Positions 989-48,800 of a DNA stretch of 64,000 nt are shown here, piece after piece. Source of the DNA: Rebecca billardiae RCC1528 (Eukaryota > Protista > Haptophyta). The translations under genes were made by a program, and so were the position numbers. The number at the start of each line of letters is the position of its first letter. The first letter of the stretch is position 1. The notes below the pieces were generated by a model, which worked only from the letters and a program-made list of their open reading frames with translations, searched no databases and had not been told where the DNA came from. The DNA lies in NCBI GenBank assembly GCA_965240325.2, contig OZ251227.1:1860001-1924000 (forward strand), given 5' to 3'.

Positions 989-1029
<41 letters not shown>

Positions 1030-4000: not shown

Positions 4001-6338
4001 CCGCGCGCGCGCCGTCCGCGTCCGCGCGCGCGCCCGCCCGCGCCTCCTCGACGGCGTCGGCGCGCGCGGTGTCCGCCGCGGCGAGGCGCGCCTCGAGCGC
4101 CGCGACGTCCGCCGCGCGCCGCGCGAGCGCCGCGCGCAGCGCGCGCGCCTCCTCCGCCGCGGACGCCGCGCCGCCGCCGCCGCCGCCGCCGCCGCGGCCG
4201 CGCGCGAGCGGCGGCGGCGGCGGCAGCGCGCGCGCAAGGGCGTCGTCGCGCTCGGCGAGCGCGCGGCGGAGCACCTCGCCCTCCGCCTCGCGCGCGCGCA
4301 CCGCGCCCTCCAGCTCCGCCACCCGCGCCGCGCCCGCCGCCGCCGCGCGCGCCGCGGCCGCGGCCGCCTCTGTCTCCTGCTGCCGCGCGGCGCCCAGCTG
4401 CGCGTGAGCGCGCGCGAGCGCGGCGCGCGCGGCGTCGAGCTGCTCGCGCGCGCTCGCGCCGAGCTCGTCGGCGTGCGCGACCGCCGCGTCGAGCCGGCTG
4501 CTCGTGCGCTGCACCACCGCCGACGCGCTCGCCTCGATCCGCTCGAGCGACGAGACGCGCCGGCGCAGCTCGGCGGCAGCGTCCGCGTGCGCGCGCGCGC
4601 GCGCCTCCGCCTCCGCCTCTCGCGACTCCGCGGCGGCGGCGCGGTGGGCCTCGGCCTCGGCGGCGGCGGCGGCGCGGCTCGCGCGCACGCGCGCCGTCTC
4701 CGCCTCGCGCGCGTGCTCCTCGCCGACCGCGCGCGCGTGCGCCGCCTCGCGCCGCGCGCTGCCGAGCGCCGCGCGCGCCGCGTCGGCCGCCGCGCGCAGC
4801 GCCGCCAGGGGCGCGGCAGCGTCGGCGGCCGCGGCGCCACCGCCGCCGGGCGCGGCGTCGGCGGCCGCGCCGCCTTCCTCGGCGGCGGCGGCGCGCTCGA
4901 GCGCGCGCGCGATCGCCACCACCTCTGCCGCATCCACGCCGCCCTCCGCCTCGTCGAGCGGAGCGCCGGCCGCGGCGGCCTCGGCGGCGCCGGGCGCGGG
5001 GCGCGCCGCGGCCGCCGCGCCGGCCGCCGCGGCCGCCGCCGCCTCCTCCTCGCGCGCAAAGGCGGCGCTCTCGCGCGCCTCGAGCAGCGCGATGCGCTCG
5101 GCGCGCGCGCGCGCCTCCTCCCGCGCCGCGCGCAGCTCGCGCTCCAGCGCGCCGTGCGCCGCCGCCGCCGCGCGCTGCGCCTCGGCCGCGCGCGCCGCCG
5201 CGCCCTCCGCCGCGTCCGCGCGCGCCCGCAGCGCGCCCACCTCCGCCGCGACCGCGCCGCTCGCGTCGTGCGAGCGGCGGCGCTCGGCGTCGAGCGCGCG
5301 CGCGGCCTCGGCGCGCAGCGCGTCGAGCTCCGCGCGCGCACCCGCCGCCTCCTCCGCCGCCGCCGCCGCGCGCGCCTCGGCCGCGTCCGCCCGCGCCGCG
5401 TGCGCGCGTGCCTCCCGCTGCGCCGCGCCCACCGCGCCATCCTTGGAGTGCAGCAGGGCGAGCACGCGCGCCGAGCGCTCCTCCGCGCGCGCGCGCTCGG
5501 CGGAGAGCGCGCGCTCCACCGCGAGCGCCACGGCCGCGTCCGCGTGCGCGCCGCCCGTCGCCGCCGGCGCCGCCGGCTCACGCCACGCCGGCGGCGGCAG
5601 CGGCGGCACCTGCTCCCAGCGAGGCGCGGCGCGCGGCTCATCCGCGCCGTCCGCGCCGCGGCGCGCGCGCTCGGCCGCGAGCTCCGCCTCGGCGTGCGCG
5701 CGCGCGCGCTCCGCCGCCCCCAGCCTCGCGCGCAGCTCGCGAGCCTCGACGCCGCCGTCGGCGCCGCCTTCCATGCCGTCCGCCTCCGCCTCCGCCTCCG
5801 CGCCCGCGTCCGCGTCCGCGTCCGTCGCCCGGTGCGCGCTCTCGCGCGCTCGCTCGTCCGCGCGGCGGGCGGGCGCGGCGGCGTTCGCGCCGAGCGGCTC
5901 GCGCGCCGCGCTCGCGCGCACGCGCGCCAGCGCCACGCGCGCGAAGAACTGCTGCGAGCCGTGCGCCGTGGACAGCACGAACACGTCGCGAAGGGACGGG
6001 GGCGGCGCGGCGGCGGCGGAGGCGCCGCCGCCGCCGCCGGGCGCGGACGGCTGCTGCGCGGCGCCGCGGCGTGGAGGCGGCTCCTTGTGCAGGCGGAGGA
6101 GGACCTGCACGTCCACCGCGCCGCCCGGCGGCACGTGCGCGCGCGAGGGCGACACCTCCCAGCGCTCCGAGTTGCCGGGCCTGATGCTGAACTCGACGGC
6201 GGCGGCGAGCGGGTTCCTCACGCGCACCGTTTGAACGTACGGCGTGTGCAGGCGCACACTGGGGAAGGAGAGCTCGGGGGGCGAGAGCTCGAGCAGTCGG
6301 TTGCGCTGCAGCGCCGCCGGCGGCTCGGGGGCCGCCAT
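1..6338 (-). CDS. Very large Ala/Glu/Arg-rich coiled-coil protein with an N-terminal ASH/MSP(PapD)-like Ig domain; 3' end lies outside the window
   Basis: Minus-strand ATG at 6338 reads MAAPEPPAALQRNRLLELSPPELSFPSVRLHTPYVQTVRVRNPLAAAVEFSIRPGNSERWEVSPSRAHVPPGGAVDVQVLLRL, a beta-sandwich pattern. It continues in the frame antisense to ORFs 1929..6668 and 324..1901 as AEAE/ARAE heptads. It is absent from the ORF track, consistent with no stop before the window edge. Candidate in-frame intron 1293..1189 (GT..CAG). Confidence 0.75.
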
Positions 6339-22596: not shown

Positions 22597-24090
22597 AAAC
22601 TGTGCCCTGGCGGGCGGGGGGGGTCGGCGGGCCGTGCCAGTGCTGTCGCAATGTATCCTTTGCGGGTTCGCGTCTTTCCACATTCGCTCGTGGCCGTGGG
22701 TGACGGACAGTCGAGTGCAAGGACCAGTGACACGTGAAGTTGGCTCCCCGACGTGATGTACACATGTTTCACGGTCTGTACTCTTAGAGTATTGTATGCG
22801 CATCAGCGAGGCCCACACCCACGAGGGAATGTGCAGCACGCGGGGCGGGGCGGGTAGCCCGTTGCTCCGCGCGAGCGCGGGTACGCGTTGCTGAGTATGT
22901 GCCGCATATCGACCGCGATGGCGTAATCGAGCGCCTCGCCGCCGTGGGCTCGGCGCAGGTCGCGTTGACGTCGTACACGGCCACAACGCTGAGCACGAGC
23001 GCGCTGACGTTCACGCGGTCGTCGCTCTTCGCATCTTCGACAGGTCTGGCGCTCGCGTGCTCGGCGGCACGAGGAGCTGTTGGTTGTGCGCGCGCGCGCA
23101 CACAGCGACAGCGTGTGCACTCGCGATCGAGAGTGGGCAAGCGCTGCTCACGCGAGCACACGAATCGCAGCGCATCCGTCACCGGCGTGACGACTTCCGC
23201 CTCGTCCCGCAGCGCCTGCGCCATGGACGAGGCCATGGCGCGGCGATGTTGCATGCTCGACGTTTCCGATCTCTCTGCGGATGGCATCACGGGCTTGTCT
23301 GTGTCGCGCTGCGGCGAGGGTCGCCAACTCGCGATGACGCGGTTGCTGCCACGGCGACAGACCCGGGAGGTGCGTCCGCAGCGCGTCGTACGCCGTTGGC
23401 GCTGCGCTTCCGTCGCATTGGTCACCGTCGACGCCATCCGGCAGGCCGGACGTGGGCTTCGGCTGAGGGACCGGACCGCGAGCAATGACTGAGTCCGGTG
23501 CGCGGATTCCGGCGATCGAGTTCAGAAGGCCGCGCCAAATCTAAAATCTTGCGTCGCGTGCGATGGCGCTTCCCGCCCGCGAGACGCCTCGTGATGAGGG
23601 CTTTCTCGCACCGAGCCCGACGCGCGACGGTGGATCGCGCGAGGCGGTCATCGTGCGCAGCGCATGATGCTATGGCCGGTGCGAGCTTTCGACGTGCACG
23701 TCGGGCGAGGATCGCCCCAGGTCGCACGATCGTGTCGACGCGCCGAGCGTACCGCATCAAACGGGTCGATTTGGGCCCCGTTCGACCTGCACGCGAGACG
23801 ACGAGGGCAGCAATCGCGAATCGGGCGAAAACACGTCTCGGGAATCCTCTCATGATGTCCGCGCCGGCGTTGGATTCGGCGCGCGCGGCCCACGCGCTCC
23901 GCGCCAGGCGCCATATGGTTTTCGGCCGAGCGTCCCCAGTGGGAGCTGCGAGGGCGCCCGGTAGTGAGCGAAGCGACCCGGCAGTGAGCGAGGCGATTTT
24001 CTTTTCTTTGCGAGGCGATTTTCTTTTTCCCTTGTATTTTTCTTATCTTTTTCCCGGGCACTACAAGGGGCGGACCTACGGCCCGCCATA
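22597..24090. mobile_element. Dispersed repeat / degenerate non-autonomous transposon, copy 1 (contains the empty site of the pogo insertion)
   Basis: Homologous in blocks to 47273-48800 plus 50725-50753. Shared left motif tgccctggcgggcggggggg(g)tcggcgggccgtgccagtgctgtcgcaat and right end tacaaggggcggacctacggcccgccata. No TSD found. Confidence 0.7.
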
Positions 24091-24628
24091 AAGAGGGCGG
24101 GTAAATTCTGGTACTACGTTTAATGCTGATGCTGAACACCGAGAGAAGAAAAGGAACGTTCGCGCTGCCGCCGACGAATCAGGAGACCTGTGTCGTCCTA
24201 TCTGTGTCGTTAAATCATAGAATGAGAGTTAGGGACTTGCGTAGTAGTAGGTCCACATTTAATATACTCAAGTGGACCACCTCATCACCACCCTGTGGCT
24301 ATCGGTCCCCAAGCCTGAGCTGTACAGTTTACTCATTCTATGATTTAACGACACTCTGTTTTAACGTGCACAGTTTACTAAGAATAAGAGACGCACACAG
24401 CTCAGGCAGGCGAGATTGACGCCCGTAATGAATTCCGCTGTGTGCGTTTTGATAAAGGGTAATTAAGAATTACCCTGCGGGTACAGGATGAACCGACGCG
24501 CAGGCAAGGGCCCTCGGCGTGCGTTCGTAAACGTGCCGCGGCGTCACCGCATGGAGATCCCCCCTTCACGCCTCCCTTCGCGCGCGACGGCCCGACCAGG
24601 TACAATGGTACATGGCCCCTGCACATCG

Positions 24629-27600
24629 ATGTCGGCGGACATGAACTCGACACTGGTACCACTAGCCGTGGTGGGCATTGCGATGGTTACGCTTGCCGCC
24701 GTCGCCAGCATGCTGCTGCGCTGGCGGGCGTGTACACGCCGCAGCGGAACCACGCGGGTCTCGTCCTCGCGTGGGCGCGCAGCGGGAGCCACGGCGAGAT
24801 GCGTCGTGGCGAGTGCAATCATCTGCTCGGCTCAAGCCGGTACCATCCCCCAGGCGAGCGAGTACCAGACCTGCATCGCTACCCCTGCGAGCTGTGTGCT
24901 CCTGTGAGCGCTGTCGCGTGCGTTAGCGCCATAGCCATAGGCGGGGCGCGCATGGGGAGGCGCATCGTGACGCCAGCGTGTTCCGGCTGGGCAGATCGGG
25001 CAGCTACGCGAGCGTTCAGCCGCGGCACATGCGCCGGCGACCGCGCTTGCATGCCACTCATCATCTGCCATCCCCCCGACCACGGCGTGCGCGTGCAGTG
25101 ACTTGAGCAACGATGGGCGCACCGGAACACTGCCGTCGGAGCTCGGGCAGCTCACGGCTCTGACTGTCCTGTGTGCGCACGCTCTCCTGGCAGACGCGCC
25201 CACTGCGGCACTGCCCATCCGCGCGCCGCGACCTGCGCACACGACCCTGTCTGCATCAGTGCACCTGCAACCACATGGTTTGGTCGCCCCCTCAGCCGCC
25301 CTTTTGGCCTTCCCTCCATGGCGATTACTACAGGTACTTGTACGACAACTTGCTCACCGGCACGGTGCCGTCTGAGCTCGGGCAGCTGACGGCCCTGACC
25401 GAACTGTGCGCGCACGCTCTGCTGGCCGACGCGCCCGCTGCTGCACTGCCCACCCGCGCCACGGCCCGCGCACGCGTTGCCGCGCATCGTCCGGCACGTG
25501 TGGGCTGCCGGCGCCCGCCATCGTGTGGCGGGCGCGCATAGCGCACCTGTGCTCGCGCTCGCATCTTCGACCGCGCGAGTACGCCACTCAGCCGCCTTTG
25601 GCCTTCCCTCCACCCACGCCATGCGAGCGCAGGGACGTGTACAAGAACGACCTCACTGGAGCACTGCCGCCGGAGCTCGGGCAGCTGACGCGCATGCGAC
25701 GCATGTGCGCGCACGCTCTCCCGGCCGACGCGCCCGCTGCGGCAATGCCCACCGCGGCCCGCGCACGCGTTGCCGCACATCCTCCCGCGCGCGTGGGGTG
25801 CTTGCGCCCGCCCGCCAGCGGCGGGGGAATAGAGCGCACATGTGCGCGCGCTCGCACCCTCGACCGCGCGAGTACGCCACTCAGCGGCCCCTGGCCTTCC
25901 CTCCACCCGCGCCATGCGAGCGCAGGGGCTTCTACACAAACGACCTCGATGGACCGATGCCGCCGGCGCTCGGGCAGCTGACGAGCATGCTTCGCCTGTG
26001 CGCGCACGCTCTCCCTGCCGACGCGCCCGCTGCTGCACTGCCCAATCGCACTACTGCCTGCGCACACGCCGCCGCACATTGTCCGGCACCGTGTGGGCTG
26101 CCGGCGCCCGGCGGCGAGCGGCGGGCGCGCGTAGCGCACCTGTGCGTGCACTCGCTCCTCGCCACTCAGCCGCCTTTGGCCCTCCGCCCACCCATGCCAT
26201 GCGATTCTTACAGGTACTTGCATAGGAACTCGTTCACCGGATCGCTGCCATCGGAGCTCGGGCAGGCGACGGTCCTGACGAAACTGTGCGCGCACGCTCT
26301 CCAGGCCGACGCGCCCGCTGCTGCACTGCCCACCCGCGCCACGGCCCGCGCACGCGTTGCCGCGCGTCGTCCCGCGCGCGTGGGCTGTACCGGCGCCCGC
26401 CAGAGCGTGGCGGGCGCACATAGCGCACCCGTGTGCGCGTTCGCACGCTCGACCGCGCGGGTGCGCCACTCACCGCCTTCGGCCCTCCCTCCTCCACCCG
26501 CGCTGACGATGCGAGCGCAGCTACTTGGACACCAACGCCTTCTTCATCGGATCGCTGCCGACGGAGCTCGGGCAGCTGACGAGCATGGACACCCTGTACG
26601 CGCACGCTCTCCCCGCCAACGCGCCCGCTGCTGCACTGCCCCCCGGCGCCGCGGGCCGCGCACACGCGGCCGCGCATCGTCCGGCACGTGTGGGCTGCCG
26701 GCGCCCGGCGGCGAGCGGCGGGCGCACGAAGCGCACACGCGCGCGCTCTCGCTCCTTCGACCGCGCGGGTGCGCCGCTCAGCCGTTTTCGGCCCTCCCTC
26801 CACCCCCGTGGGCCGAGTGCAGGAACGCGCACGACGCCCCGTTCACAGGCACGCTGCCGACCGAGATTGCGCGCATGACCGACCTGGTCTTGATGTGCGC
26901 GCTGAGCTGCCGCTGCGGCGTGCCGTGTGCACGCGCACTCAGTGTCGCATGGCGCCACTCTCGCGCTGCGCCTCCATGCGCGCACCCCTTCACCGGCCTG
27001 ACGAATGAATGCGGGTGTATGTACTGCGTGCCTTCCACTGCCCCACAGGGACGTGTCCGTCACTTCGATCTGGGGCGGAGAGCACGGCTACCCCGGCGTG
27101 ACGCCTGCAGTGCTGCCTGATTACCCGCCGTACCCTCCACCCAGCCCGCCGCCGAGCTTGCCGCCACCGAGCCCACCACCGTCGCCACCGCCGTCGCCAC
27201 CGCCGTCGCCGCCGCCGAGCCCGCCGCCGCCATCCCCGCCGCCGAGCCCGCCACCGTCGCCGCCACCATCGCCGCCGCCGAGCCCACCGCCGCCATCGCC
27301 GCCTCCGCGCCCGCCACCGTCGCCGCCACCATCGCCGCCGCCGAGCCCACCGCCGCCGTTGCCGCCGCCAAGCCCACCACCCTCACCGCCACCATCGCCG
27401 CCACCCAGCCCACCGCCGCCATTGCCGCCGCCATCGCCTCCACCGAGCCCTCCGCCACCGCTGCCACCGCCGAGCCCGCCACCGTCGCCACCGCCATCAC
27501 CGCCACCAAGCCCACCGCCGCCATCGCCGCCTCCGAGCCCGCCACCGTCGCCGCCACCGTCGCCGCCGCCGAGCCCACCGCCGCCATCGCCGCCTCCAAG

Positions 27601-30600
27601 CCCGCCACCGTCGCCGCCACCATCGACGCCACCAACGCCTCCACCGAGCCCGCCGCCACCGTCCCCGCCTCCGCGCCCACCACCGTCGCCACCACCATCG
27701 CCTCCACCGAGCCCTCCGCCACCATCGCCGCCTCCGCGCCCGCCGCCATTGCCGCCACCATCGCCTCCACCGAGCCCACCGCCACCGTCGCCTCCTCCGA
27801 GCCCGCCACCGTCACCGCCTCCGAGCCCGCCACCATCGCCGCCACCATCGCCGCCACCGAGCCCTCCGCCGCCATCGCCGCCACCGAGCCCGCCACCGTC
27901 GCCGCCACCATCGCCTCCACCGAGCCCGCCGCCACCGTCCCCGCCTCCGCGCCCACCACCGTCGCCACCACCATCGCCTCCACCGAGCCCTCCGCCACCG
28001 TCCCCGCCTCCGCGCCCACCACCGTCGCCACCACCATCGCCTCCACCGAGCCCTCCGCCACCGTCCCCGCCTCCGAGCCCGCCACCGTCGCCGCCACCGT
28101 CGCCGCCGCCGAGCCCTCCGCCACCGTCGCCGCCTCCGAGCCCGCCACCGACGCCGCCACCGTCGCCGCCGCCGAGCCCACCGCCGCCATCGCCGCCTCC
28201 AAGCCCGCCACCGTCGCCGCCACCATCGCCGCCACCAGGCCCTCCGCCACCGTCACCGCCACCGAGCCCGCCACCGTCGCCACCACCATCGCCGCCGCCG
28301 AGTCCACCGCCGCCGTTGCCGCCGCCAAGCCCACCACCTTCACCGCCACCATCGCCGCCACCGAGCCCTCCGCCGCCATCGCCGCCACCGAGCCCGCCAC
28401 CGTCGCCGCCACCATCGCCTCCACCGAGCCCTCCGCCACCGTCCCCGCCTCCGCGCCCACCACCGTCGCCACCACCATCGCCTCCACCGAGCCCGCCGCC
28501 ACCGTCCCCGCCTCCGAGCCCGCCACCGTCGCCGCCACCGTCGCCGCCACCGAGCCCACCGCCACCGTCCCCGCCTCCGAGCCCGCCACCGTCGCCGCCA
28601 CCGTCGCCGCCGCCGAGCCCACCGCCGCCATCGCCGCCTCCGAGCCCGCCACCGTCGCCGCCACCATCGCCGCCACCAGGCCCTCCGCCACCGTCACCGC
28701 CACCGAGCCCGCCACCGTCGCCACCACCATCGCCGCCGCCGAGCCCACCGCCGCCGTTGCCGCCGCCAAGCCCACCACCTTCACCGCCACCATCGCCGCC
28801 ACCGAGCCCTCCGCCGCCATCGCCGCCACCGAGCCCGCCACCGTCGCCGCCACCATCGCCTCCACCGAGCCCTCCGCCACCGTCCCCGCCTCCGCGCCCA
28901 CCACCGTCGCCGCCACCATCGCCTCCACCGAGCCCTCCGCCACCGTCCCCGCCTCCGAGCCCGCCGCCGTCGCCGCCACCGTCGCCGCCGCCGAGCCCAC
29001 CGCCACCGTCGCTGCCTCCAAGCCCGCCACCGTCGCCGCCACCATCGCCGCCGCCGAGCCCTCCGCCGCCATCGCCGCCTCCAAGCCCGCCACCGTTGCC
29101 GCCACCATCGCCGCCACCGAGCCCTCCGCCACCGTCCCCGCCTCCGAGCCCGCCACCATCGCCGCCACCATCGCCTCCACCGAGCCCGCCGCCACCGTCA
29201 CCGCCACCGAGCCCGCCGCCGTTGCCGCCACCGTCGCCGCCGCCGAGCCCACCGCCACCGTCGCTGCCTCCAAGCCCGCCACCGTCGCCGCCACCATCGC
29301 CGCCGCCGAGCCCTCCGCCGCCATCGCCGCCTCCAAGCCCGCCACCGTCGCCGCCACCATCGCCGCCACCAGGCCCTCCGCCACCGTCACCGCCACCGAG
29401 CCCGCCGCCGTCGCCGCCACCGTCGCCGCCGCCGAGCCCACCGCCACCGTCGCTGCCTCCAAGCCCGCCACCGTCGCCGCCACCATCGCCGCCGCCGAGC
29501 CCTCCGCCGCCATCGCCGCCTCCAAGCCCGCCACCGTCGCCGCCACCATCGCCGCCACCAGGCCCTCCGCCACCGTCACCGCCACCGAGCCCGCCACCGT
29601 CGCCACCACCATCGCCGCCGCCGAGCCCACCGCCGCCGTTGCCGCCGCCAAGCCCACCACCTTCACCGCCACCATCGCCGCCACCGAGCCCTCCGCCGCC
29701 ATCGCCGCCACCGATCCCGCCACCGTCGCCGCCACCATCGCCTCCACCGAGCCCTCCGCCACCGTCCCCGCCTCCGAGCCCGCCGCCGTCGCCGCCACCG
29801 TCGCCGCCGCCGAGCCCACCGCCGCCATCGCCGCCTCCGAGCCCGCCACCGTCGCCGCCACCATCGCCTCCACCGAGCCCTCCGCCACCGTCACCGCCAC
29901 CGAGCCCGCCACCATCGCCACCACCATCGCCGCCGCCGAGCCCACCGCCGCCGTTGCCGCCGCCAAGCCCACCACCTTCACCGCCACCATCGCCGCCACC
30001 GAGCCCTCCGCCGCCATCGCCGCCACCGATCCCGCCACCGTCGCCGCCACCATCGCCTCCACCGAGCCCTCCGCCACCGTCCCCGCCTCCGAGCCCGCCA
30101 CCGTCGCCACCACCATCGCCTCCACCGAGCCCGCCGCCACCGTCACCGCCACCGAGCCCGCCGCCGTCGCCGCCACCATCGCCTCCACCGAGCCCGCCGC
30201 CACCGTCACCGCCACCGCGCCCGCCACCATCGCCGCCACCATCGCCTCCACCGAGCCCTCCGCCACCGTCACCGCCACCGAGCCCGCCACCGTCGCCGCC
30301 ACCATCGCCGCCACCGAGCCCTCCGCCACCGTCACCGCCTCCGAGCCCGCCACCATCGCCGCCACCATCGCCGCCACCGAGCCCTCCGCCGCCATCGCCG
30401 CCACCGAGCCCGCCACCGTCGCCGCCACCATCGCCTCCACCGAGCCCGCCGCCACCGTCACCGCCTCCGAGCCCGCCACCGTCGCCGCCACCATCGCCTC
30501 CACCGAGCCCGCCGCCACCGTCCCCGCCTCCGCGCCCACCACCGTCGCCACCACCATCGCCTCCACCGAGCCCTCCGCCACCGTCCCCGCCTCCGAGCCC

Positions 30601-33600
30601 GCCACCGTCGCCGCCACCGTCGCCGCCGCCGAGCCCTCCGCCACCGTCGCCGCCTCCGAGCCCTCCACCGTCGCCACCACCATCGCCGCCGCCGAGCCCA
30701 CCGCCGCCGTTGCCGCCGCCAAGCCCACCACCATCGCCGCCACCGTCGCCGCCGCCGAGCCCACCGCCGCCGTTGCCGCCGCCAAGCCCACCACCATCGC
30801 CGCCACCATCGCCGCCACCGAGCCCTCCGCCGCCATCGCCGCCACCGAGCCCGCCGCCGTCGCCACCACCATCGCCTCCACCGAGCCCGCCGCCACCGTC
30901 CCCGCCTCCGAGCCCGCCGCCGTCGCCGCCACCGTCGCCGCCGCCGAGCCCACTGCCGCCATCGCCGCCTCCGAGCCCGCCACCGTCGCCGCCACCATCG
31001 CCTCCACCGAGCCCTCCGCCACCGTCACCGCCACCGAGCCCGCCACCGTCGCCACCACCATCGCCGCCGCCGAGCCCACCGCCGCCGTTGCCGCCGCCAA
31101 GCCCACCACCGTCGCCGCCACCATCGCCGCCGCCGAGCCCTCCGCCGCCATCGCCGCCACCGATCCCGCCACCGTCGCCGCCACCATCGCCTCCACCGAG
31201 CCCACCGCCACCGTCACCGCCACCGAGCCCGCCACCGTCGCCACCACCATCGCCACCGCCGAGCCCACCGCCGCCGTTGCCGCCGCCAAGCCCACCACCT
31301 TCACCGCCACCATCGCCGCCACCGAGCCCTCCGCCGCCATCGCCGCCACCGAGCCCGCCACCGTCGCCGCCACCATCGCCTCCACCGAGCCCGCCGCCAC
31401 CGTCCCCGCCTCCGCGCCCGCCACCGTCACCACCACCATCGCCTCCACCGAGCCCGCCGCCACCGTCCCCGCCTCCGAGCCCGCCACCGTCGCCACCACC
31501 ATCGCCTCCACCGAGCCCTCCGCCACCGTCCCCGCCTCCGAGCCTGCCACCGTCGCCGCCACCGTCGCCGCCGCCGAGCCCACCGCCGCCGTCGCTGCCT
31601 CCGCGCCCACCACCGTCGCCGCCACCATCGCCGCCGCCGAGCCCTCCGCCGCCATCGCCGCCACCGATCCCGCCACCGTCGCCGCCACCATCGCCTCCAC
31701 CGAGCCCACCGCCACCGTCACCGCCACCGAGCCCGCCACCGTCGCCACCACCATCGCCGCCGCCGAGCCCACCGCCGCCGTTGCCGCCGCCAAGCCCACC
31801 ACCTTCACCGCCACCATCGCCGCCACCGAGCCCTCCGCCGCCATCGCCGCCACCGAGCCCGCCACCGTCGCCGCCACCATCGCCTCCACCGAGCCCGCCG
31901 CCACCGTCCCCGCCTCCGCGCCCGCCACCGTCACCACCACCATCGCCTCCACCGAGCCCGCCGCCACCGTCCCCGCCTCCGAGCCCGCCACCGTCGCCGC
32001 CACCATCGCCTCCACCGAGCCCTCCGCCACCGTCCCCGCCTCCGAGCCTGCCACCGTCGCCGCCACCGTCGCCGCCGCCGAGCCCACCGCCGCCGTCGCT
32101 GCCTCCGCGCCCACCACCGTCGCCGCCACCATCGCCGCCGCCGTCGCCGCCACCGAGCCCACCGCCGCCATTGCCACCGCCGCGCCCGCCGCCATCGCCA
32201 CCGCCGTCGCCGCCGCCGAGCCCGCCGCCACCGTCGCCGCCGCCATCGCCGCCGCCGAGCCCTCCGCCGTCACCGCCGCCGAGCCCACCGCCGCCATTGC
32301 CACCGCCGAGCCCGCCACCATCGCCGCCGCCGTCGCCGCCGCCAAGCCCACCGCCACCCTCGCCGCTGCCGAGCCCGCCGCCATCGCCACCGCCGTCACC
32401 GCCGCCGAGCCCACCGCCACCCAGGCCGCCACCGAGCCCGCCACCGTCGCTACCGCCGTCGTCGCCGCCGAGCCCACCGCCGCCACTGCCACCGCCAAGC
32501 CCGCCACCATCATCGCCACCATTGCCACCGCCCAGCCCACCGCCCCCGCTGCCACCGCCGAGCCCACCGCCATCGCCGCCGCCCAGCCCGCCGCCACCCT
32601 CAATGCCACCGAGCCCGCCACCATCGCCACCGCCGTCGCCGCCACCGAACCCACCGCCACCCTCAATGCCACCGAGCCCGCCGCCATCGCCGCCGCCGTC
32701 GCCGCCACCGAGCCCACCACCGCCATTGCCGCCGCCGAGCCCGCCACCATCGCCGCCGCCGTCGCCGCCGCCAGGCCCACCGCCACCATTGCCACCGCCG
32801 AGCCCGCCACCATCGCCGCCGCCGTCGCCGCCACCAAGCCCACTGCCACCTTCGCCGCCGCCGAGCCCGCCACCATCGCCACCGCCGTCGCCGCCACCGA
32901 GCCCACCGCCACCCTGGCCGCCACCGAGCCCGCCACCGTCGCCACTGCCGTCGCCGCCACCGAGCCCACCACCGCCACTGCCGCCGCCGAGCCCGCCGCC
33001 ATCGCCGCCGCCGTCGCCGCCGCCAGGCCCACCGCCACCATTGCCACCACCGAGCCCGCCACCATCGCCGCCGCCGTCGCCGCCACCAAGCCCACCGCCA
33101 CCCTCGCCGCCGCCGTGCCCCCCACCATCCCCACCGCCGTCGCCGCCGCCGAGCCCACCGCAACCATCGCCGCCGCCGAGCCCGCCACCGTCGCCGCCGC
33201 CGTCGCCGCCACCGAGCCCACCACCGCCACTGCCGCCGCCGAGCCCGCCACCATTGCCACCGCCGTCGCCCCCGCCAGGCCCACCGCCACCATTGCCACC
33301 GCCGAGCCCGCCACCATCGCCGCCACCATTGCCGCCGCCCTCGCCGCCGCCGAGCCCACCGCCGCCATTGCCGCCGCCGAGCCCCCCACCATCCCCACCG
33401 CCGTCGCCGCCGCCGAGCCCACCGCCACCGTCGCCGCCACCGAGCCCGCCGCCATCGCCACCGCCGTCGCCGCCGCCGAGCCCACCGCCGCCACTGCCAC
33501 CGCCGAGCCCACCGCCATCGCCGCCGCCATCGCCGCCGCCGAGCCCTCCGCCACCGTCGCCGCCTCCGAACCCACCTCCGTCACCACCACCATCGCCACC

Positions 33601-36600
33601 GCCGAGCCCACCGCCACCACTGCTACCGCCAAGCCCGCCACCATCACCGCCGCCGTCGCCACCGCCAAGCCCACTGCCACCGCTGCCACCGCCAAGCCCG
33701 CCACCGTCGCCGCCACCATCGCCGCCACCATCGCCTGCACCGAGCCCATCGCCACCTTCGCCGCCACCGAGCCCGCCGCCTTCACCGCCGCCGTCACCGC
33801 CACCGAGACCGCCACCGCCTCTGCCACCACCGTCACCACCGCCCTCGCCTCCGCCATCGCCGCCGCCCAGCCCACCACCGTCAACAACGACACCATTGCC
33901 ACCGCCGAGCCCGCCGCCTTTGTCGCCGCTGCCCTCCCCGCCGCCCACGCAACCGCCCTCGCTGCCACCCTCGCCCCCGCCGACCCCGCCGCCCTCGCTG
34001 CCGCCCTCGCCGCCGCCGAGCCCACCTCCAGCGCCCTTCCCATCGCCCCCGCCCAGCCCCCCTCCGGGCGCTCTGCCGCCCGCACCGCCGCCGCCGCCGC
34101 CGCCGCGGCCGTCGCCGCCACAGCCACCGAGCATTCCGCCGCCCCTGCCGCCGTCGCTGCCCCCGAGCCTCCGCCCTCTGGACCCGCCCTCGCCTCCGCC
34201 ACCGGCGCCGCCCTCAGCCGAGTCACCGCCACCGCACCAGCCTCCGCTGCCGCCGCCGAGCCCGCCGCCACCAGGCCCGCCGCCGCCACCGCCGTCGGCG
34301 CCGCCGCCGCCCCCGCCGCTCGCCGCGCCGGCCCTACTCTCCGCCGCGTTCGACTCGAGCGCCACCAGCCTCGTCCTCCGCTTCGACTCACCAACCGACC
34401 GCGGCGGGCTGAACGCCGGGCTGGCGCGGTGCGCGCCGCTGCTCGACGACGAGACGCTCGGCCTCGTGGCCGGCGGCGCGGCTGTGGCCGAGGCGGCCGA
34501 CGGCGGCGCACGCGAGCGGCAGTGCTACTGGCGGGACGACCGCTCGCTTGTCGTGAACCTGCGCGCGGCCTCGCACGTCCGGCCGGGCGACCGCGTGGGC
34601 GTGCGCGCTGGGGCCATCGCCCACGTCGCGTGCGCGGCGCGCGCGCCCGCGGCGCCGTGCGCGGCGCACGCGTACGCGGCTGCGGCGAGCGTGGTGATCT
34701 CGGCGGACGCCCCGTGCGGCGTGAGCTCGGCGTGCGCCGCGCCCATCGCAAGCGTGTCCGGCGCGCGCGTGCTGCCGACATGCGCCGCCGCCTCGCTCCG
34801 CCTGATCGGCGGCGTGGGCGGCGGCGGCGGTGTCTTGCCTCTCTCCTTTGAGTGGCGCGTGGCGCCGCTCGCGGCGGACCCGCCGCCCGCCGCGGCCGTG
34901 GCGGCGCTGTCGGCGCTGCTCGAGGCGCTGCCTCCAACGCAGGCGGTGCTCGAGCTCGACGCGGCCGCGCTCGGCGCCGAGGGCGGCTTCGTCTTCTCCC
35001 TCGTCCTCACCTCCGCGCTCGGCATCGCGTCCGCGCCCGCGACGCACGCCGTGGCGCGCGCGCCGCCGAACGGCCCGAGCGTCGAGGTGGATGGGCGGTC
35101 GTCGGGCGTGCTCGCGCGCGCGGACAGCGCCGTGCGGCTGTGGGCGAACGTCGGCCTGTCCCCGTGCTGGCCATCCACGCTCTCCGCGCACGTGCGCTTC
35201 GGCTGGGCGGTGCTCAACGTGACGCGCGACGACGACGTCGACAGCGGCGTCTCGGCCGCGCCGAGTGCCGCGGCGCCGCGCGTGCCCGACCTGAGCGATG
35301 CCGCCGGCGCGACGCTGCAGCTGCCGCCGTGGTCGCTGAGCGCGGGGCACGCATACACGCTGCGCGTGCTCGCGACGATGGCCGCGGTGCCCGAGCTCAG
35401 CGCGAGCGCCGACGTCTCGCTGCGCGTGCCCTACTTGCCGCTGCGAGCCGCGCTCACGCCGAGCGCCGCGCGCGTGGGCGGTGCCGACGCGGTGCGGCTG
35501 GACGCCTCCGCCTCGGCCAACCCGAACGAGGCGGCGGGCGGCGGGCTCGCGTTCGCGTGGGGGGTGGCGCGCGCGGCAGACGGCGTGCCCGTCGAGCTCG
35601 ACCTGCCCAACGCCACCTCGCCCACGCTGCTGCTGCCGCCGGGCGCGCTGCCGCACGGCGCGGCGTATCTCGTGCGCGTGCTCGTGTCTGCGCCCGGCGC
35701 GCCCGCGCTCGCGCCCGCGGCGGCGGAGGCGAGGGTCGAGGTAGTGGCAGCGGCGGCGGCGCTGCCGACGCTCCGCCTGGCGCCGCTCGCCGCGCGCAAG
35801 GCCGCGCCCACGTGGGAGCGCAGCAGCGGCCGCCTCGCCCTCCGCGCCACCGTCGACGCCGCCGCGGACGCCGAGCTCGCCGACGGCGCGGAGGCGGAGG
35901 CGGCGCACGACTTTGCGTGGCGCGCGTGGCTCGTGGGCGCGGGCGGCGCGCGCACGCCCGCGCCGTTCGACCTGGCGGACAGCGCCGGCGTCACGACGAC
36001 GGGCGCCGGACAGCCCACGCTTGCCTTCCGCAGCGGCGCGCTCAGCGCGGGCGCGACCTATGCGTTCGAGGTGCGCGCGACGCGGCGCGCGGACGGCGCG
36101 GCCGGCGGCGCGGCGGCCGCGGAGCTGGTCGTGGTGGTCAACCGGCCGCCGTACGGCGGGGCGCTGGCGGTCTCGCCGGCGCACGGCGTCGCCGCGCTCA
36201 CGCCGTTCGCGCTGCGCGCGATCAGCTGGACGGACGACGACCCGGACGACCTGCCGCTCAGCTACGCCTTCTCGCACGCGGCCGTGGACGAGGGCGCGGC
36301 CGCGGCGCTCGGCGCGGCGCAGCGCTCGGCGCACGCGCTCGCGCTGCTGCCCGCGGGCAACCGCACGCTGTACGTGCGCGTGGCGGACGCGCTCGGCGCG
36401 AGCGCGCGCGCTGTGTCGTCCGTGCGCGTGTACTCGCTCCGCGCCGACGCCGCCGCCGCAGCTGAAGCCGCCGTGCCCGGCTCGGGCGGCGCGGTGGCGG
36501 ACGCGGCCGTGAGCGCGGCAGTGGCGCGCGCGCAGCTTGCTCTGGGCTCTGGCGACACGACTCGCTCGCTGCAGCTCGCCGGCGCGATCGCCGCGGAGCT

Positions 36601-39600
36601 GGGCGGCCCCGCGCCCGCCAACGCGTCCCTCGCCGCGGAGGCGGCCGTCTCGCTCTCGCTCCTCCAGCTCAGCGCGGGCGCCGCGCGCGCGGGCGCCCTG
36701 GAGGAGGCGGAGTCGCGCGCACACACAACGTTCACACTGTCAGCGGTTGTGAGCGCCGCGCCGCCGGCGGCGCTCGGGACGGGCGAGATGCAGCTGAGCG
36801 CGCTGGCGCAGGCGGCGGCGATCGGCGCGGCGGCGGCGACGACGACGGGCGTGGGCGCCGCCGAGGGCGCCGCGCTGCTGAGCGCGCTCGACGCCACGCT
36901 CGGCGCGCCCGCGACCGAGCTCGCGCCCGCGGCCGCGGCGGCGGTGGGCGCGGCCGCCGCCTCCGCCGCGGAGGGGCTGGCGCGCGCGCTGCTGGTGGGA
37001 GCGCTGCCGGGCGACCCGCCCGTGGCGGCGGTGGGCGCGCGTCTCAACGTGTCCGCCGCGCGGCTCGCGCCCTCCGCGCTGCTCAACGCCAGCCTCGCCG
37101 GCGCGGGCGGCGCGGGCATGCTGCGCGTGCCGCCGAGCGCGCTCGCCGGCGTCGACGCGTCGGCGCTGGGCGGCTCGGGCGTGGACGTGCTGCTGTGGAG
37201 CGTGGGCAGGGCGGGCCTGCGCGCGCCGGGGGCGGACGCGGCGCTGAACGGCTCGGCGGCCACGCCCACCGCGACGAGCGTCTTCTCGGTCACGCTCGCC
37301 TCGGCGGCCAGCGGCTCGGCGCTGGCCATCTCGGGGCTGGCCGAGCCGCTGCTGCTCGGCATCCCGCCGCTGCCGCCGGCCGCGGCCGGCGCTCCGAACG
37401 GCTCGGCGGCCGACGCGGCCGACGCGGCCGAGTGCCGCTGGTGGGACGAGGTGCGCGGCGCGTGGGTGGCTGACGGGTGCACGACGCTGCCGCCCGACGG
37501 CTCCGCGCTCCTCTGGTGCGCGTGCGACCACCTCACCGAGTTTGCCGGCGTGGCGCTCGACGTGCCCGACTCGGCGGCGGACGCGCTCGACGACGCCAAG
37601 GCGTTCAGGCTCGAGCCGCTCGGCGCGGACGACGTGGCGGGCGCGCTGCTCGCGCCCGCGGCCGAGCGCGACCCGACGCTGCACGCGCTGGTCGGCAGCC
37701 TCGCCGCCGCGTGCCTCGCGTCCGTGTGCGCGCTCGGCTGCCGCGACCGGCAGGCCGCGCGGCGCAAGGCCGCGCAGGTGCTCGCGGACGAGGGCTCGGA
37801 GGAGCAGCAGCCCGCGGGGCCGCGCGTCTTCCGGCGCGCGCTCAGCATGCACGGGGCGCGCGCGCCCACCGCCGCCGCGCCCACCGCGGCCGCGGCCGGC
37901 GGCGGCGAGGCGGAGATCTCGCCCGCGCTGCTCGCCGCGCTCGCCGAGCAGCACGCCGCGTGCGAGATCCAGCGGTACGTCCGCGGGCTGCTCGCGCGCC
38001 GCGCGGCGCTCGACGAGGCGGAGTCGCACGCGGCGAGCTCGCTGCCCGGCGGCGGCGGCGGCGGCGGAGGCAAGCACTCGCGGCTCGCGGCGCTGTGGGC
38101 GCCCGTGCGGCGGCTGAGCGGCGCGGACGCGCTCGGGCTCGCGCGCGCGCTCGCCAGCCGCGCGGGCGCCGAGCACACGCTGCTCGGCGCGCTGCTCGGC
38201 CGGCGCGAGCCCTTGCTGCTGCCCTCTGAGCTCGCCATCCTCTTCTGGGCGGCGGCGGCGCTCGGGCTCGTGCTCTCGTGCGCGCAGTACGACGACGCGC
38301 CGGAGGGCGCGCCCGTCGTGCTGATCCACGAGCTCCTCGCCGCGGCGACGACGGCGCTGCTCAGCGCGCCGCTGCTCCTCGCCGTCAAGTCGCTGTTCTC
38401 TCGCGCGCGCTGGCAGGGCTCGAGCGCGCGCCGTGTGCTCACGCGCGCCGAGCGCGCGCGGCTCGTGTTCGACGAGGCGGTGCGCGTGCGCGCGGCCGCG
38501 CTCGGCGGCGCACAGCCGGCGGTGGAGCGCGGGGCGCGGGCACACGAACGCGCCGGCCGCGCCGCGCCGCGCCGCGAGCTCAGCTGGTGGGACCGGCGGG
38601 GCCGCGCGGACGCGCCCGCAGCCGCGGCGCTGGACCGCGTGCTCCCGACACGCGCCTCACGCCGCCAGCAGCCCTCGCCCGTCGCCATCGCCGTGTCTGT
38701 CGACACGCCGCCCGACCCGCCGGCTCGGTGCGCACCGCACGCGCCCGCGGACGCGGACGCGGACGCGCCGGCGGGCGCGCGCGACGCGGGCGGCACCCGC
38801 TCCAGCTCCGACGGCTCTGAGCGGAGCTGCTCTGCGGCCGTGGCGCTCGCGCGCGCCGGCGCGTCGCCCAACGGCGTGCGCTCGCGCGTCTCCGCCGACG
38901 AGCTGCCCGAGCCGGCGGCCGCGGACGCGGCCGCGCCGGCGAGTGCGCTCGGCCGCGCGCCGAGCGTGCTCACGGAGCGCGCGCTGCGCGAGCACACGAC
39001 GCGCATGCGTGAGCACACGACGCGCGCCGCGCGCCGCGGCTCGGCGCGCGCGCCGCGGGCAGCGGTGGCAGGCGCGCCGTTGCCTTATGCCGAGCGCGCC
39101 CCCGCTTCGCTCGAGCACTGCCCCGACTCGCCGCCGCTGCCGAGGCTGGGCGTGTCGATGCGGCCGCTGGTGCTCCCGCCCGTGCCGCCGCACTCGCCCG
39201 CGCCGCGCTCGCCGCTCGCGCTCACCAGCGCGACGCCCACCCCGCGCGCGCCCGCGCTCGCAGCGGCCGAGGGCTCGAGCGACTCCGCTCAGCGCGCGCC
39301 CGCACACGCGGCGGGCGCAAGCGGCTCGCCGTGCGACTCGCGGCCGTCCGGCAGCCTCGGCAGCCTCGGTGCCCGCTTCTCGAGCCGCAGCGGCTCGAGC
39401 GTCACGCTCGCATGGGCATCGCCGCGCCGATCGAGCCGCGCCTCGGCCGCGCAGCCGCAGCAGCCGCCGCAGCAGCAGTGGCGGGGTGGCGCGTCCAATG
39501 CGTCGACGGCACTGGGCTCACCGGCCGAGGGCTCGGCGCGCCCCTCCGCCGCGCCGTCGCCGCGCACGCCGCCCTCCTCGCCGCCCGCGCCCGGGCCGCC

Positions 39601-40708
39601 GCCCGCGCCGCCCGCGCCGCTGCAGGCGGCGCCCGCGGCGGCGCGCCCAGCGGCGGAGGGCGGCGAGTGGCGGCGCTCGCGCGCACGCTGTGGTGGGCCT
39701 TCTGAGCAGCTCGGCCTAGGCCTGCCCTCGCCCGCCGCCAGCTCTCAGCCCGAGGCGCTGCGCCGCCGCGCCTCGCTCTCGTCGGTGGGCTCGGCCGAGT
39801 CGGTCCCGCGCGTGCGCACCATCTCCACAGAGCTCGCGCAGCAGTACCTGCCCTCGGCGAGCTCGCGCTTCGAGGCGCCGACCGAGGCGGAGCGGCTGCG
39901 CGCGGCCGGCCTCTCGCCCGCGCCGCCCGCGCTGCGCGCCGCGCGTCTCTCCTCGCTGAGCGCGGAGCTGGGCACGCAGCTCACGCGCGGCACGGACGGC
40001 GTCTCGGTGGCGGAGGCGTCCGAGCTGACGGCCGAGAGCCTCGCCTCCGTCTCCGTCCTCTCCGCGCCGCACACGCACGGCCTCGACTCCGCCTCCGCCT
40101 CGCTGCTGCGCTACCGCTTCGTGCTCGCAGACCCGACACTCTCGGGCGCGGTGCACCCGCGCGCCGCTCGCCGCTTCCTCGAGGAGCTCGGCTTTGGCAA
40201 GGGGCTCGCGGCGCGCGCGGTCGCAAGGCTCGCGGCGGAGGAGGCGGAGGCGGGCGGCGGCGCCGTCCCCTTCCGCGCGCTGTGCGGCTGGTACGCGGCG
40301 CGCGTGGAGGACGGGGCGCGCGCGAGCGTGCGGCGCACGGCGCGCGCAGGGGCGTGGGCGCCGCGCCGCGCGCGCGCCTTGTGCCGCGCGGCGTGCGGCG
40401 CGCGCTTCCGCACGGCGCTCGGCTGGCTCATCTCGGTGGTGACGGTGTGCGCGTGCTGCCTCTCCGCGCTCGCGTACGGCTACCGCTTCGGCCGCGCCAA
40501 GACGCGGCGCATGATGCTCAGCTGGGGGCTCGCCGAGGCGCAGCGGCTCGCGCTGGTCGAGCCGCTGCTCACGCTCGTGCGCGTCGGCGCGGCGCAGGCG
40601 GTGCGGCGCACGGCGCACTTTGGCGCGACGGTGGGTGACTCGATCAACGAGGCGCTCGCGTCGGGCACCGGCCGTGCCCTGCAGTGGGCGGCGAGTCACC
40701 TCGCCTAG
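24629..40708 (+). CDS. Giant (~4,800 aa) LRR - extensin-like stalk - REJ/GAIN-GPS - polycystin-1-like membrane receptor; exons 24629-24903, 25099-25170, 25334-25405, 25633-25704, 25926-25997, 26214-26285, 26521-26595, 26823-26894, 27049-40708
   Basis: Eight GT-AG introns, all phase 2, splice into one open frame that joins ORF 27005..40708. Plant-type LRR consensus LxLxxNxLTGxLPxELGQLTxL. SPPP/SPPPP stalk. REJ-type VVVNRPPYGGALAVSP..WTDDDPDDLPLSYAF. GPS motif CRWWD..W..DGC..CACDHLTEFA. About 5 hydrophobic segments. Start could be 24629 or 24641. Confidence 0.88.
25099..26894 (+). repeat. Tandem array of exon+intron LRR cassettes (period ~235-307 bp)
   Basis: Seven exons of 72 nt (one of 75 nt). 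The introns between them share gtg(c/t)gcgcacgctctc..gccgacgcgcccgctgctgcactgccc at their 5' ends. Confidence 0.92.
27122..34320 (+). repeat. Coding minisatellite: extensin/HRGP-like (SPPP)3-SPPPP unit of 17 aa / 51 bp, ~2,400 aa in total
   Basis: Direct translation; regular up to ~33.7 kb and degenerate afterwards. Confidence 0.97.
37433..37546 (+). other. GPS autoproteolysis motif (H-L|T at 37529-37537)
   Basis: CRWWDEVRGAWVADGCTTLPPDGSALLWCACDHLTEFA has the four Cys, the conserved Trp residues and the HL|T triad. Confidence 0.9.
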
Positions 40709-47089: not shown

Positions 47090-48800
47090 ATTACAGAATC
47101 GCGAACCGTCAGAACCCCCTCGGAGCAAGGGGCTTACAAAATACCACTTTTGTAAGCCCCTTGCTGTGAGGTGCTCTCCGCCACTAACAGAACAATCGAA
47201 ATTGAGAACAATCGAGATTGAGATTGTTCTCGCCACTAACAGAACAATCGAGGTCGCCCGCCGCCGAAAATTAAACTCTGCCCTGGCGGGCGGGGGGGTC
47301 GGCGGGCCGTGCCAGTGCTGTCGCAATATTTCCTTCAGCGGGTCGTTATTCGCGCCTTTTAGTTTTATTTAGCGGTTTGACGGGCAGGATGACGAATAAC
47401 AGTGCGACACACAGATGATGGTGAGCTACCTGACTCACTGACGAATAATAACGCGACAGATGACTCTGGTGATCTCACCGACAGTGTGATTGCGCGTGTA
47501 TTCGTGCACCCACTGCGCTACTCGTCATCGTGCCGAGCCGGCGTCGACTGCGCGCACGGCGCACTGCCAACTGATTGGCGTGCGACGGCGGCTTGCTTGT
47601 GACGCCTGACGGTGACGGTTCAATGTCCTCGGAGCTAAACAGTGGTGGCGGAGTGTGATGTCATGTTTCATTTGTTTAGGTCGTCTGGAAGTGCGGTGCG
47701 TGCGCGCGCAGTGCGAGAGCGTGTGCCACTCGCGATCGAGGGTGGGCACGCGCTGCTCGAGCAGGCACATGAAGCGCAGCGCATGTGCCACTGGCTTCAC
47801 GACGTCGGCCTCGTCCAGCAGCGCCCGTGCCATGGTGGAGGATGGGGCGACGATGTTGCACGCTCGGCGTTTCACTCTCGTGGCGGATGTGCGTCCGTGG
47901 GATCGAGCGCTGTGCGACGAGGGCCGCCGACTCGCCAAGATGCGGTTCTGTCCACGGCTGCAAACCCGGCAGGTGCGTGCGGTGCGCCTCGTACGCCGCT
48001 TTGCGCTGCGCCTCCATCGCATTGGTCACCGTCGACGCCATGCAGGCCGGACGTGGGCCCTGAGGCGCCGAGCGATTTTTGGCCGCGAGCTCGCGAGCGC
48101 GAAAGATGATCGCCCGCTCTGGAACACCACCGACCGTACAGTTTACTAAGAATAAGAGACGCACACAGCTCAGGCAGGCGACAGTAGCAAACGGATTTGC
48201 ATGCGCCCGACCTTGCCAACCGGGGCACGCGACAGTCCGGTGTGTGCATTCCGGTTATGGTGTTCAGAGGCCGCGCCAAAGCTTGCGTCGCGTGCGATGG
48301 CGCTTCCCGCCCGCGAGACGCCTCTTGATGAGGGCCTTTCGTACCGAGCTCGACGCGCGACGGTGGATCGCGCGAGGCGGCCATCGTGCGCAGCGCTTGA
48401 TGCTATGGCCGGTGCGAGCGCTCGACGTGCAAGTCAAGCGAGGACCGCCCCAGGTCGCACGATCGTGTCGACGCGCCGAGCGTGCCTCCAAACGCGTCGA
48501 CTTTGGCCCTCGTTCGACCTGCACGCGAGACGACGAGGGCAGCAATCGCGAATCGGGCGAAAACACGTCTCGGGAATCCTCGCGCGATGTCCGCGCTGGC
48601 GTTGGATTTGGCGCGCGCCGCCCACGCGCTCCGCGCCATAACCAAGATGGTTTTCGGCCGAGCGTCCCCAGTGGGAGCTGCGAGGGCGCCCGGTAGTGAG
48701 CGAAGCGACCCGGCCTGGGCAGTGAGCGAGGCGATTTTCTTTTCTTTGCGAGGCGATTTTCTTTTTCCTTTTCTTTTTCTTATCTTTTTCCCGGGCACTA

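Follow-up and report, generated by a model that had tools for sequence, protein, structure and literature searches.

A one-repeat-per-exon array of plant-type leucine-rich repeats at the predicted head of a giant REJ/GPS protein in the haptophyte Rebecca billardiae

The window analysed here is a 64-kb stretch of contig OZ251227.1 of Rebecca billardiae RCC1528 (Haptophyta), and all coordinates are positions within it. It contains, on the forward strand, a candidate gene for a very large surface protein. The gene opens with a short first exon, continues through seven small exons that each encode one leucine-rich repeat (LRR), and ends in a single very long exon that encodes a Ser-Pro rod, a REJ domain, a GPS motif and several hydrophobic helices (Table 1). 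Splice sites were inferred from the sequence and from the register of the LRRs. All eight introns are of the GT..AG type, 154-235 nucleotides (nt) long and in phase 2 (i.e. after the second base of a codon), and the coding sequence is open over 4,813 codons after the exons are joined. This exon/intron anatomy is read directly from the DNA, and the splicing that would join the exons is predicted from it.

The seven LRR exons are all present where the original prediction, made from the letters of the window, had placed them. Six are 72 nt long and one is 75 nt, all have phase-2 flanks, and each encodes one 24-residue repeat of the form xLxxNxLtGxLPxELGQLTxLxx (25 residues in LRR exon 6). The "xxL" that opens LRR 1 is provided by exon 1, which also encodes a hydrophobic signal/anchor segment at residues 12-30 and two cysteines (C-x6-C) directly before LRR 1. 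The intron lies within the codon of the fourth leucine of LxxLxLxxN, which is split as CT/N or AT/N (the slash marks the intron). When all junctions were computed, every possible exon-exon join yielded Leu, Met or Ile at the split codon. Therefore, the gain or loss of a unit preserves both the reading frame and the hydrophobic core residue. The earlier claim that exons could be skipped, duplicated or swapped without a frameshift holds accordingly, the exons being of phase 2-2 with lengths that are multiples of three, and the six junction strings reported with it (TVL/YLYDN, TEL/DVYKN, RRM/GFYTN, LRL/YLHRN, TKL/YLDTN and DTL/NAHDA) were reproduced letter for letter. The backbone of the repeats had been described as nearly invariant. 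This is correct for six of the seven units, in which (L/M)PxxLGQ(L/A)T is present, and does not extend to unit 7, which reads LPTEIARMT. A 26-nt backbone pattern gave six matches against 0.00 expected by chance. The splice sites are uniform (GTGCGC..CAG): five donors are GTGCGCGCAC, and all acceptors have CAG following a pyrimidine tract.

Once the exons are joined, the seven units (24 residues; one of 25) fit the plant-specific consensus LxxLxLxxNxLxGxIPxxLxxLxx. A profile of the seven units was compared with solved structures, and nearly all the matches listed were plant LRR ectodomains. These included MIK2 (9e-35) as well as FLS2, GSO1, ERL1/2, PEPR1, SERK1/2, BAK1, LRX (LRX1-like and LRX2) and PGIP. 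Single units, which at 23-24 residues are too short as Pfam queries, gave an LRR_1 match in one of seven cases (E 0.16). By consensus and by profile, the repeats are classed as plant-type 24-residue LRRs.

The array arose by tandem duplication. Tandem Repeats Finder detected a period of 293 nt with five copies (score 1387), and this single period of ~293 nt spans both the LRR exon and the intron, which together form the repeated unit. Introns 3-7 show 77-88% pairwise identity, intron 2 has its first ~72 nt in common with them, and intron 1 shows a weak relationship to the family in its 3′ half (E 4e-4). These introns are mosaics, in which the nearest neighbour of a unit shifts along its length. 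In the first part of the intron there are 2 differences in 75 sites between units U3 and U6, and U5 and U7 are nearest to each other in the middle of the intron (4/62 sites). U3 and U4 differ along the unit at 5/69, 18/62 (middle), 6/55 and 2/35 sites, the last being the 3′ end, where they are the closest pair. Heterogeneity along the unit was significant in chi-square tests (U3-U4: p = 0.0008; U3-U6: p = 0.02; U5-U7: p = 0.007). A nearest neighbour that shifts in this way is what unequal crossover or gene conversion among resident units leaves behind. No copy of the intron family was found outside the array on either strand of the whole window. An nhmmer search of both strands with the LRR exon profile recovered only the seven in-gene exons (next best E 0.53) and no orphan, antisense or inactivated LRR exon. 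The orphan donor exons and other cassette arrays for which the original prediction had proposed a search were thus absent from the 64 kb with both exon and intron profiles.

Each of introns 3-7 (within 25406-26822) begins with the palindrome GTGCGCGCAC and carries a GC hairpin of 9-10 base pairs, GCGCCCGCC..GGCGGGCGC, with a variable loop. Folding of the intron alignment gave no covariation support for these hairpins (covariation term +3.6). In addition, 28 nt of intron 1 (24943-24970) are 75% complementary to 26961-26988 of intron 8, a pairing that would loop out the whole LRR array. This complementarity may well be due to chance, given the GC-rich DNA.

In the LxxLxLxxN strand of an LRR, the x positions 2, 3, 5, 7 and 8 point into the concave sheet, and concave-face residues that differ from repeat to repeat are usual for any LRR binding surface. 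We took x2, x3, x5, x7 and x8 as exposed codons and compared divergence among the five units with homologous introns. Positions x2 and x3 stand at the end of one exon, and x5, x7 and x8 at the start of the next. Therefore, the variable face straddles the intron, as had been proposed. The mean pairwise difference was 0.59 over the 15 exposed-codon bases, against 0.23 in the remainder of the exon and 0.17 over 227 intron columns. Exposed codons were thus about three times as divergent as introns (Fisher: p = 1e-4; Mann-Whitney: p = 1e-7), and none of 20,000 intron block samples attained their divergence. The comparison of exposed and backbone residues that the original prediction had suggested also gave an excess at exposed codons. 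By the Nei-Gojobori method, their nonsynonymous divergence (dN) over the few sites of this one gene was ~1.1-1.2, compared with a synonymous divergence (dS) of 0.20-0.37 in the backbone and an intron divergence (K) of 0.21, i.e. a three- to six-fold excess. The sliding divergence profile of the unit had maxima at both exon ends and its minimum at the GAGCTCGGGCAGCTGAC core. These divergence data show selection on the exposed residues, acting either for novelty or to protect already different contacts from homogenisation.

The last exon encodes the remainder of the protein. Behind the rod, a REJ domain is followed by a GPS motif whose CACDHLTEF stretch lies ~45 residues ahead of the first hydrophobic helix. 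The membrane segment is 26% identical (E 4e-9) to that of a pavlovophyte homologue (P0001). REJ and GPS were the only Pfam matches in the 2,122 residues beyond the Ser-Pro rod, where no ROC-COR GTPase was found, and exon 1 had no Pfam match. Up to the stop at 40708 there was no Pfam match to PLAT or PKD_channel, and hydropathy indicated only about four hydrophobic helices, not an arrangement of 11 transmembrane helices. PKD, C-type lectin and WSC domains were not detected in the Pfam scan either. The protein had been described as an extracellular polycystin-like receptor. The REJ domain and GPS motif downstream of the head agree with this description, which fails with respect to the PLAT and channel domains. 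REJ and GPS are extracellular in all characterised members of the family (PMC9672506), and therefore the LRR head is predicted to be extracellular, at the distal end of the rod. Cleavage at the GPS motif and binding of a ligand by the concave face are likewise putative.

Between membrane helices 1 and 2 there is an IQ-like stretch, IQRYVRGLLARR, at 37850-37900 (residues ~3,890-3,905 of the joined protein), which aligns with a similar stretch of P0001.

Table 1. Features of the candidate REJ/GPS gene in the 64-kb window of R. billardiae RCC1528
Feature	Position	Strand	Description and evidence
Exon 1	24629..24903	+	275 nt; start codon; donor CT/GTGAGC, phase 2
LRR exon 1	25099..25170	+	72 nt, LDLSNDGRTGTLPSELGQLTALTV; nhmmer E 3.5e-17
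Introns 2-7 and the five LRR exons among them	25171..26822	+	Introns homologous, 163-235 nt
LRR exon 2	25334..25405	+	72 nt, LYLYDNLLTGTVPSELGQLTALTE; nhmmer exon profile
LRR exon 3	25633..25704	+	72 nt, LDVYKNDLTGALPPELGQLTRMRR; nhmmer exon profile
LRR exon 4	25926..25997	+	72 nt, MGFYTNDLDGPMPPALGQLTSMLR; nhmmer exon profile
LRR exon 5	26214..26285	+	72 nt, LYLHRNSFTGSLPSELGQATVLTK; nhmmer exon profile
LRR exon 6	26521..26595	+	75 nt, one codon more than the others, LYLDTNAFFIGSLPTELGQLTSMDT; nhmmer exon profile
LRR exon 7	26823..26894	+	72 nt, most diverged unit, LNAHDAPFTGTLPTEIARMTDLVL; nhmmer E 1.6e-13
Last exon	27049..40708	+	13,660 nt, stop at 40708; begins with closing half-repeat (M)DVSV
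Ser-Pro3/4 extensin-like rod	27122..34320	+	~2,400 residues; translation; GC 0.80, strong C skew
REJ domain	35291..36454	+	Pfam PF02010, E 2.2e-29
GPS motif	37430..37546	+	Pfam PF01825, E 2.1e-6; HLT tripeptide, ..CACDHLTEF..
Membrane anchor	37685..38386	+	Helix 37685-37741, IQ-like stretch, helices 38216-38272 and 38330-38386; hydropathy scan
Fourth hydrophobic helix	40406-40462	+	Hydropathy scan

We consider it probable that the array forms the N-terminal, extracellular, ligand-binding head of a single giant surface receptor, that it was produced by tandem duplication in the germline and that it is spliced constitutively. The head would consist of the seven plant-type 24-residue LRRs and a closing half-repeat. 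In the germline, a ~293-nt unit of one LRR exon with its intron would repeatedly have been duplicated in tandem, and the duplicated units would later have been patched via gene conversion or unequal crossover among themselves. An intron in the Leu-4 codon would make the number of repeats easy to alter over evolutionary time. The scaffold GxLPxELGQLT would have been kept nearly constant while x2, x3, x5, x7 and x8 diverged several-fold faster than introns and synonymous sites, owing to selection either for new contacts or against homogenising them. The eight short introns are most likely removed constitutively, giving one head. This head would sit at the tip of the ~2,400-residue Ser-Pro rod, tethered through REJ and a self-cleaving GPS to a membrane anchor of few helices.

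Several observations weigh against this interpretation. In the single public run found to hold part of the stretch (library type unspecified; 5% of words), contigs cover only 24370-24425 and 26972-27130, without splice joints. The former interval is a dispersed 45-nt repeat, and the latter is a single 171-nt contig over ~160 nt around the start of the last exon. Open frames carry little weight in DNA this GC-rich, and intron 5 is itself stop-free in frame. Intron 8, which leads from LRR exon 7 to the rod exon, is unrelated to the other introns, and its junction rests on GT..AG, the phase and a donor whose first 8 nt are common to the family. As to selection, conservation beyond that of the introns is confined to the GAGCTCGGGCAGCTGAC core and does not hold for the backbone as a whole (p 0.23 versus 0.17 in introns; Mann-Whitney: p = 0.19). 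Intron identity is partly set by gene conversion and is an imperfect neutral yardstick, and the dN/dS comparison draws on few sites in seven units of one gene, with exposed codons near saturation.

The gene model may be wrong or the locus dead, in that the LRR array, as a small gene or pseudogene of its own, could be unconnected to the Ser-Pro/REJ exon, or could be unexpressed. The run contigs, which are confined to the two intervals above and offer no RNA support for the joints, are consistent with this, as is the lack of homology between intron 8 and the other introns. Moreover, read-through of intron 8 meets a stop at 27118-27120, and the plant-type LRR motif occurs in none of the 150 best public REJ-GPS homologues. 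However, frames, splice sites and LRR register are intact in all seven LRR exons despite ~20% neutral divergence between units. Intron 8 also has the GTGCGCGC of the family at its donor and, at its acceptor, the pyrimidine tract and CAG seen in the family. The next exon opens with the beta-strand that closes the last repeat, and public models of genes of this type are visibly truncated. We consider an incorrect model or a dead locus quite improbable. The resemblance of the introns to one another, with their palindromic start GTGCGCGCAC, could also mean that a mobile introner had inserted many times over, always at one point within repeats that already existed. This idea was rejected. The intron family is confined to the array and absent from the remaining ~61 kb of the window, and a mobile introner is therefore disfavoured; moreover, a single ~293-nt period spans exon and intron, and identical insertion points would be required in seven repeats, which makes such an origin scarcely credible.

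The original prediction saw in the array a combinatorial module, in which regulated skipping or choice of symmetric LRR exons would generate many heads, possibly for self/non-self recognition, mating or the sensing of viruses or bacteria. All the LRR exons are indeed of phase 2-2 and a multiple of three in length, and each junction restores L, M or I. There are also precedents: splice variants that differ in their combination of LRRs occur in Ectocarpus ROCO genes, where the LRR exons are likewise 72 nt long (PMC11378527), and Medicago SERK3 (MtSERK3) has a variant without the first-LRR exon (PMC3061892). However, the symmetric phase is no sign of cassette use, because duplication of one exon-plus-intron unit yields it automatically. 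In addition, the introns are only 154-235 nt long and their GTGCGC..CAG sites are uniform and strong, which favours recognition by intron definition and constitutive splicing. When the introns were searched for inverted repeats and their alignment was folded, only GC-rich hairpins emerged, with no one-to-many pairing of the docking/selector kind and no covariation-supported structure. Regulated choice among the exons therefore seems unlikely to us. The proposal has partial support: the array could in principle be shuffled, but the analysis gave no positive indication of combinatorial use. A fuller version of it, in which heads assembled from regulated cassettes are held ~0.7 micrometre from the cell on the rod and ligand capture is read mechanically via the self-cleaving GPS, is quite unlikely. 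If true, it would place diversification of the brown-alga or Dscam kind on a force sensor resembling adhesion G-protein-coupled receptors and polycystins, in a haptophyte. Shuffling could instead draw on spare LRR exons from which the array is rebuilt. This could happen in somatic cells, like the assembly of lamprey VLR genes, or in the germline, the route suggested for Ectocarpus ROCO loci. The mosaic introns do record sequence that moved between units. The observed movement is limited to resident units, however, the exon profile matches only the seven in-gene exons on both strands of the 64 kb, the intron family is limited to the array, and the germline gene is complete and open. Rebuilding from donor cassettes is very improbable.

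Genes with one repeat per exon have been described before in brown algae, plants and vertebrates. The novelty of the Rebecca gene lies in its lineage, in an intron placed inside the beta-strand and in the Ser-Pro stalk. The brown-algal precedent named in the original prediction is real. ROCO and other type I LRR genes of Ectocarpus and Saccharina carry one 24-residue LRR per 72-nt exon in phase 2 (PMC3341825; PMC11378527). Their LRR exons have a plant-like GxxPxxL motif and positive selection at concave-face residues, and they have been proposed to build evolvable receptors (Zambounis et al. 2012, PMC3341825; PMC11378527). The Rebecca array resembles these in having one LRR per 72-nt phase-2 exon (here six of 72 nt and one of 75 nt) and a nonsynonymous excess at the concave face (here among units within one gene, a small sample). 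However, the brown-algal exon reads GxxPxxLxxxxxLxxLxLxxNxLx, with the intron between repeats, whereas here the beta-strand is split at the Leu-4 codon. The brown-algal LRRs are part of cytosolic ROC-COR GTPases or kinases, and those of Rebecca of a predicted extracellular head with a Ser-Pro rod, REJ and GPS. In addition, brown-algal introns hold orphan and antisense LRR exons, of which the Rebecca window has none, and brown algae are stramenopiles while this array is from a haptophyte. The different intron position, lineage and partner domains therefore point to an independent origin of the same design.

As cited in PMC11378527, gonadotropin receptors have single-LRR exons of similar size, all in phase 2, which are taken to reflect growth by exon duplication. 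LH/FSH/TSH receptors are like the Rebecca protein in that an extracellular LRR ectodomain is built from single-repeat phase-2 exons. They differ in their LRR class, in their base, which is a receptor with seven transmembrane helices coupled to G proteins, and in their old, diverged introns, and they lack the near-identical introns that indicate recent duplication in Rebecca. Among plant LRR receptor kinases, the SERK family and ERECTA give each LRR an exon of its own. The plant SERK family shares with the array its LRR class (the profile matches SERK1/2, BAK1 and ERL1/2) and the placing of domains on separate exons. SERKs have a Ser-Pro-rich hinge after the LRRs. This hinge is short and the base is a kinase, whereas here a 2,400-residue rod leads to a REJ/GPS base. 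In plant LRX proteins a plant-type LRR head is followed by a Ser-Pro(n) extensin domain, as in Rebecca. LRX proteins are secreted to the wall, have a Cys-rich hinge and lack a membrane anchor, REJ and GPS, while the Rebecca chain runs on into REJ, GPS and membrane helices.

Lamprey VLR and insect Dscam are similar in that repeated cassettes (LRRs in VLR, immunoglobulin domains in Dscam) carry the diversity. VLR requires an incomplete germline gene with flanking donor cassettes, and Dscam requires docking/selector RNA pairing and mutually exclusive exon clusters. The Rebecca array, by contrast, is complete and open, with no other LRR cassettes in the window, and no docking/selector pairing was found in its introns. 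The order of domains resembles that of polycystin-1, PKDREJ and sea-urchin REJ in having LRRs, then REJ, then GPS near the first membrane helix. Human polycystin-1 has N-terminal LRRs, REJ and a GPS with HL-T/S beside the first membrane helix (PMC9672506). The Rebecca protein differs from polycystin-1 in that no PLAT, 11-transmembrane/channel part, PKD, C-type lectin or WSC domain was detected and in that its LRRs are plant-type, without LRRNT/LRRCT caps; its Ser-Pro rod has no counterpart in polycystin-1. The original prediction had supposed the whole combination to be undescribed. LRRs with REJ and GPS are already described in polycystin-1 (PMC9672506), whereas the papers searched contain no description of a REJ/GPS protein in which a Ser-Pro rod carries a plant-type LRR head with one repeat per exon, nor of LRR exon arrays in haptophytes.

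Relatives of the REJ-GPS part are numerous in public data. An exhaustive HMMER search found 1,451 proteins, the best at 35-40% identity, and the named homologues were from Diacronema lutheri and Pavlovales sp. CCMP2436, in agreement with a pavlovophyte origin of the window. The heads of the 150 best homologues, all lacking the plant-type LRR motif, are TIG/IPT or other domains, some of them behind a short Ser-Pro linker, and many of these proteins end in EF-hands. In Pavlovales sp. CCMP2436 (MU631364.1; L051, 8100-10000), an unannotated (SPPP)n run of ~1 kb and a small non-LRR head directly precede the REJ gene KAJ1635852.1, at a locus with N gaps in the assembly. The public model of KAJ1635852.1 is truncated at the proline rod. 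A stalk with a REJ/GPS chassis is therefore common to these species, the head is exchangeable and the public models are incomplete.

Word-indexed protein searches gave no match with the REJ-GPS part within the 4,552-residue exon, nor with an open reading frame running from LRR exon 4 across intron 5 into LRR exon 5, which is a poor query. A metagenome scan with a three-unit LRR alignment returned 50 loci and no close relative. These loci are mostly contiguous (i.e. intron-less) LRR genes with 34-69% GC. A few AT-rich eukaryotic contigs among the metagenome hits (L023, L037 and L042; GC 0.34-0.37) encode plant-type LRRs with the same GxLPxELGxL backbone on exons of one or two repeats, and the intron position within the repeat seems different from that in the Rebecca array.

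If the gene model holds, the design of symmetric one-LRR exons with a variable concave face extends from brown algae, plants and vertebrates to a haptophyte. With an independent origin, as the different intron point would imply, it would also be a case of convergent evolution of recognition domains that are easily resized. The near-identical mosaic introns preserve the growth of an LRR domain and the divergence of its binding face in a record that is unusually recent and easy to read. In addition, the head makes this giant REJ/GPS protein with its Ser-Pro stalk a candidate for a surface sensor or adhesin, in an algal group in which cell-surface recognition is essentially unstudied.

The surroundings of the gene also contain repeated elements. 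Rfam had no match in 23500-27200. A 45-nt element, ACAGTTTACTAAGAATAAGAGACGCACACAGCTCAGGCAGGCGA, is present in two exact copies on the forward strand (24369-24413 and 48137-48181), whose flanks are unrelated. The receptor start codon follows the first copy at a distance of ~215 nt, and Rfam has no match to the element. In the contigs of run X1 the element has a word depth of ~100-200 and many different flanks, and it belongs to the short dispersed repeats. Closely upstream of the gene, TCGTTAAATCATAGAATGAG and its complement (24207-24226 and 24332-24351) form a perfect inverted repeat of 20 nt around ~105 nt of unusually AT-rich DNA, and together they look like the remnant of a miniature transposon. 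Finally, positions 1-6000 of the window have 86-88% G+C and contain long open frames in several frames on both strands.

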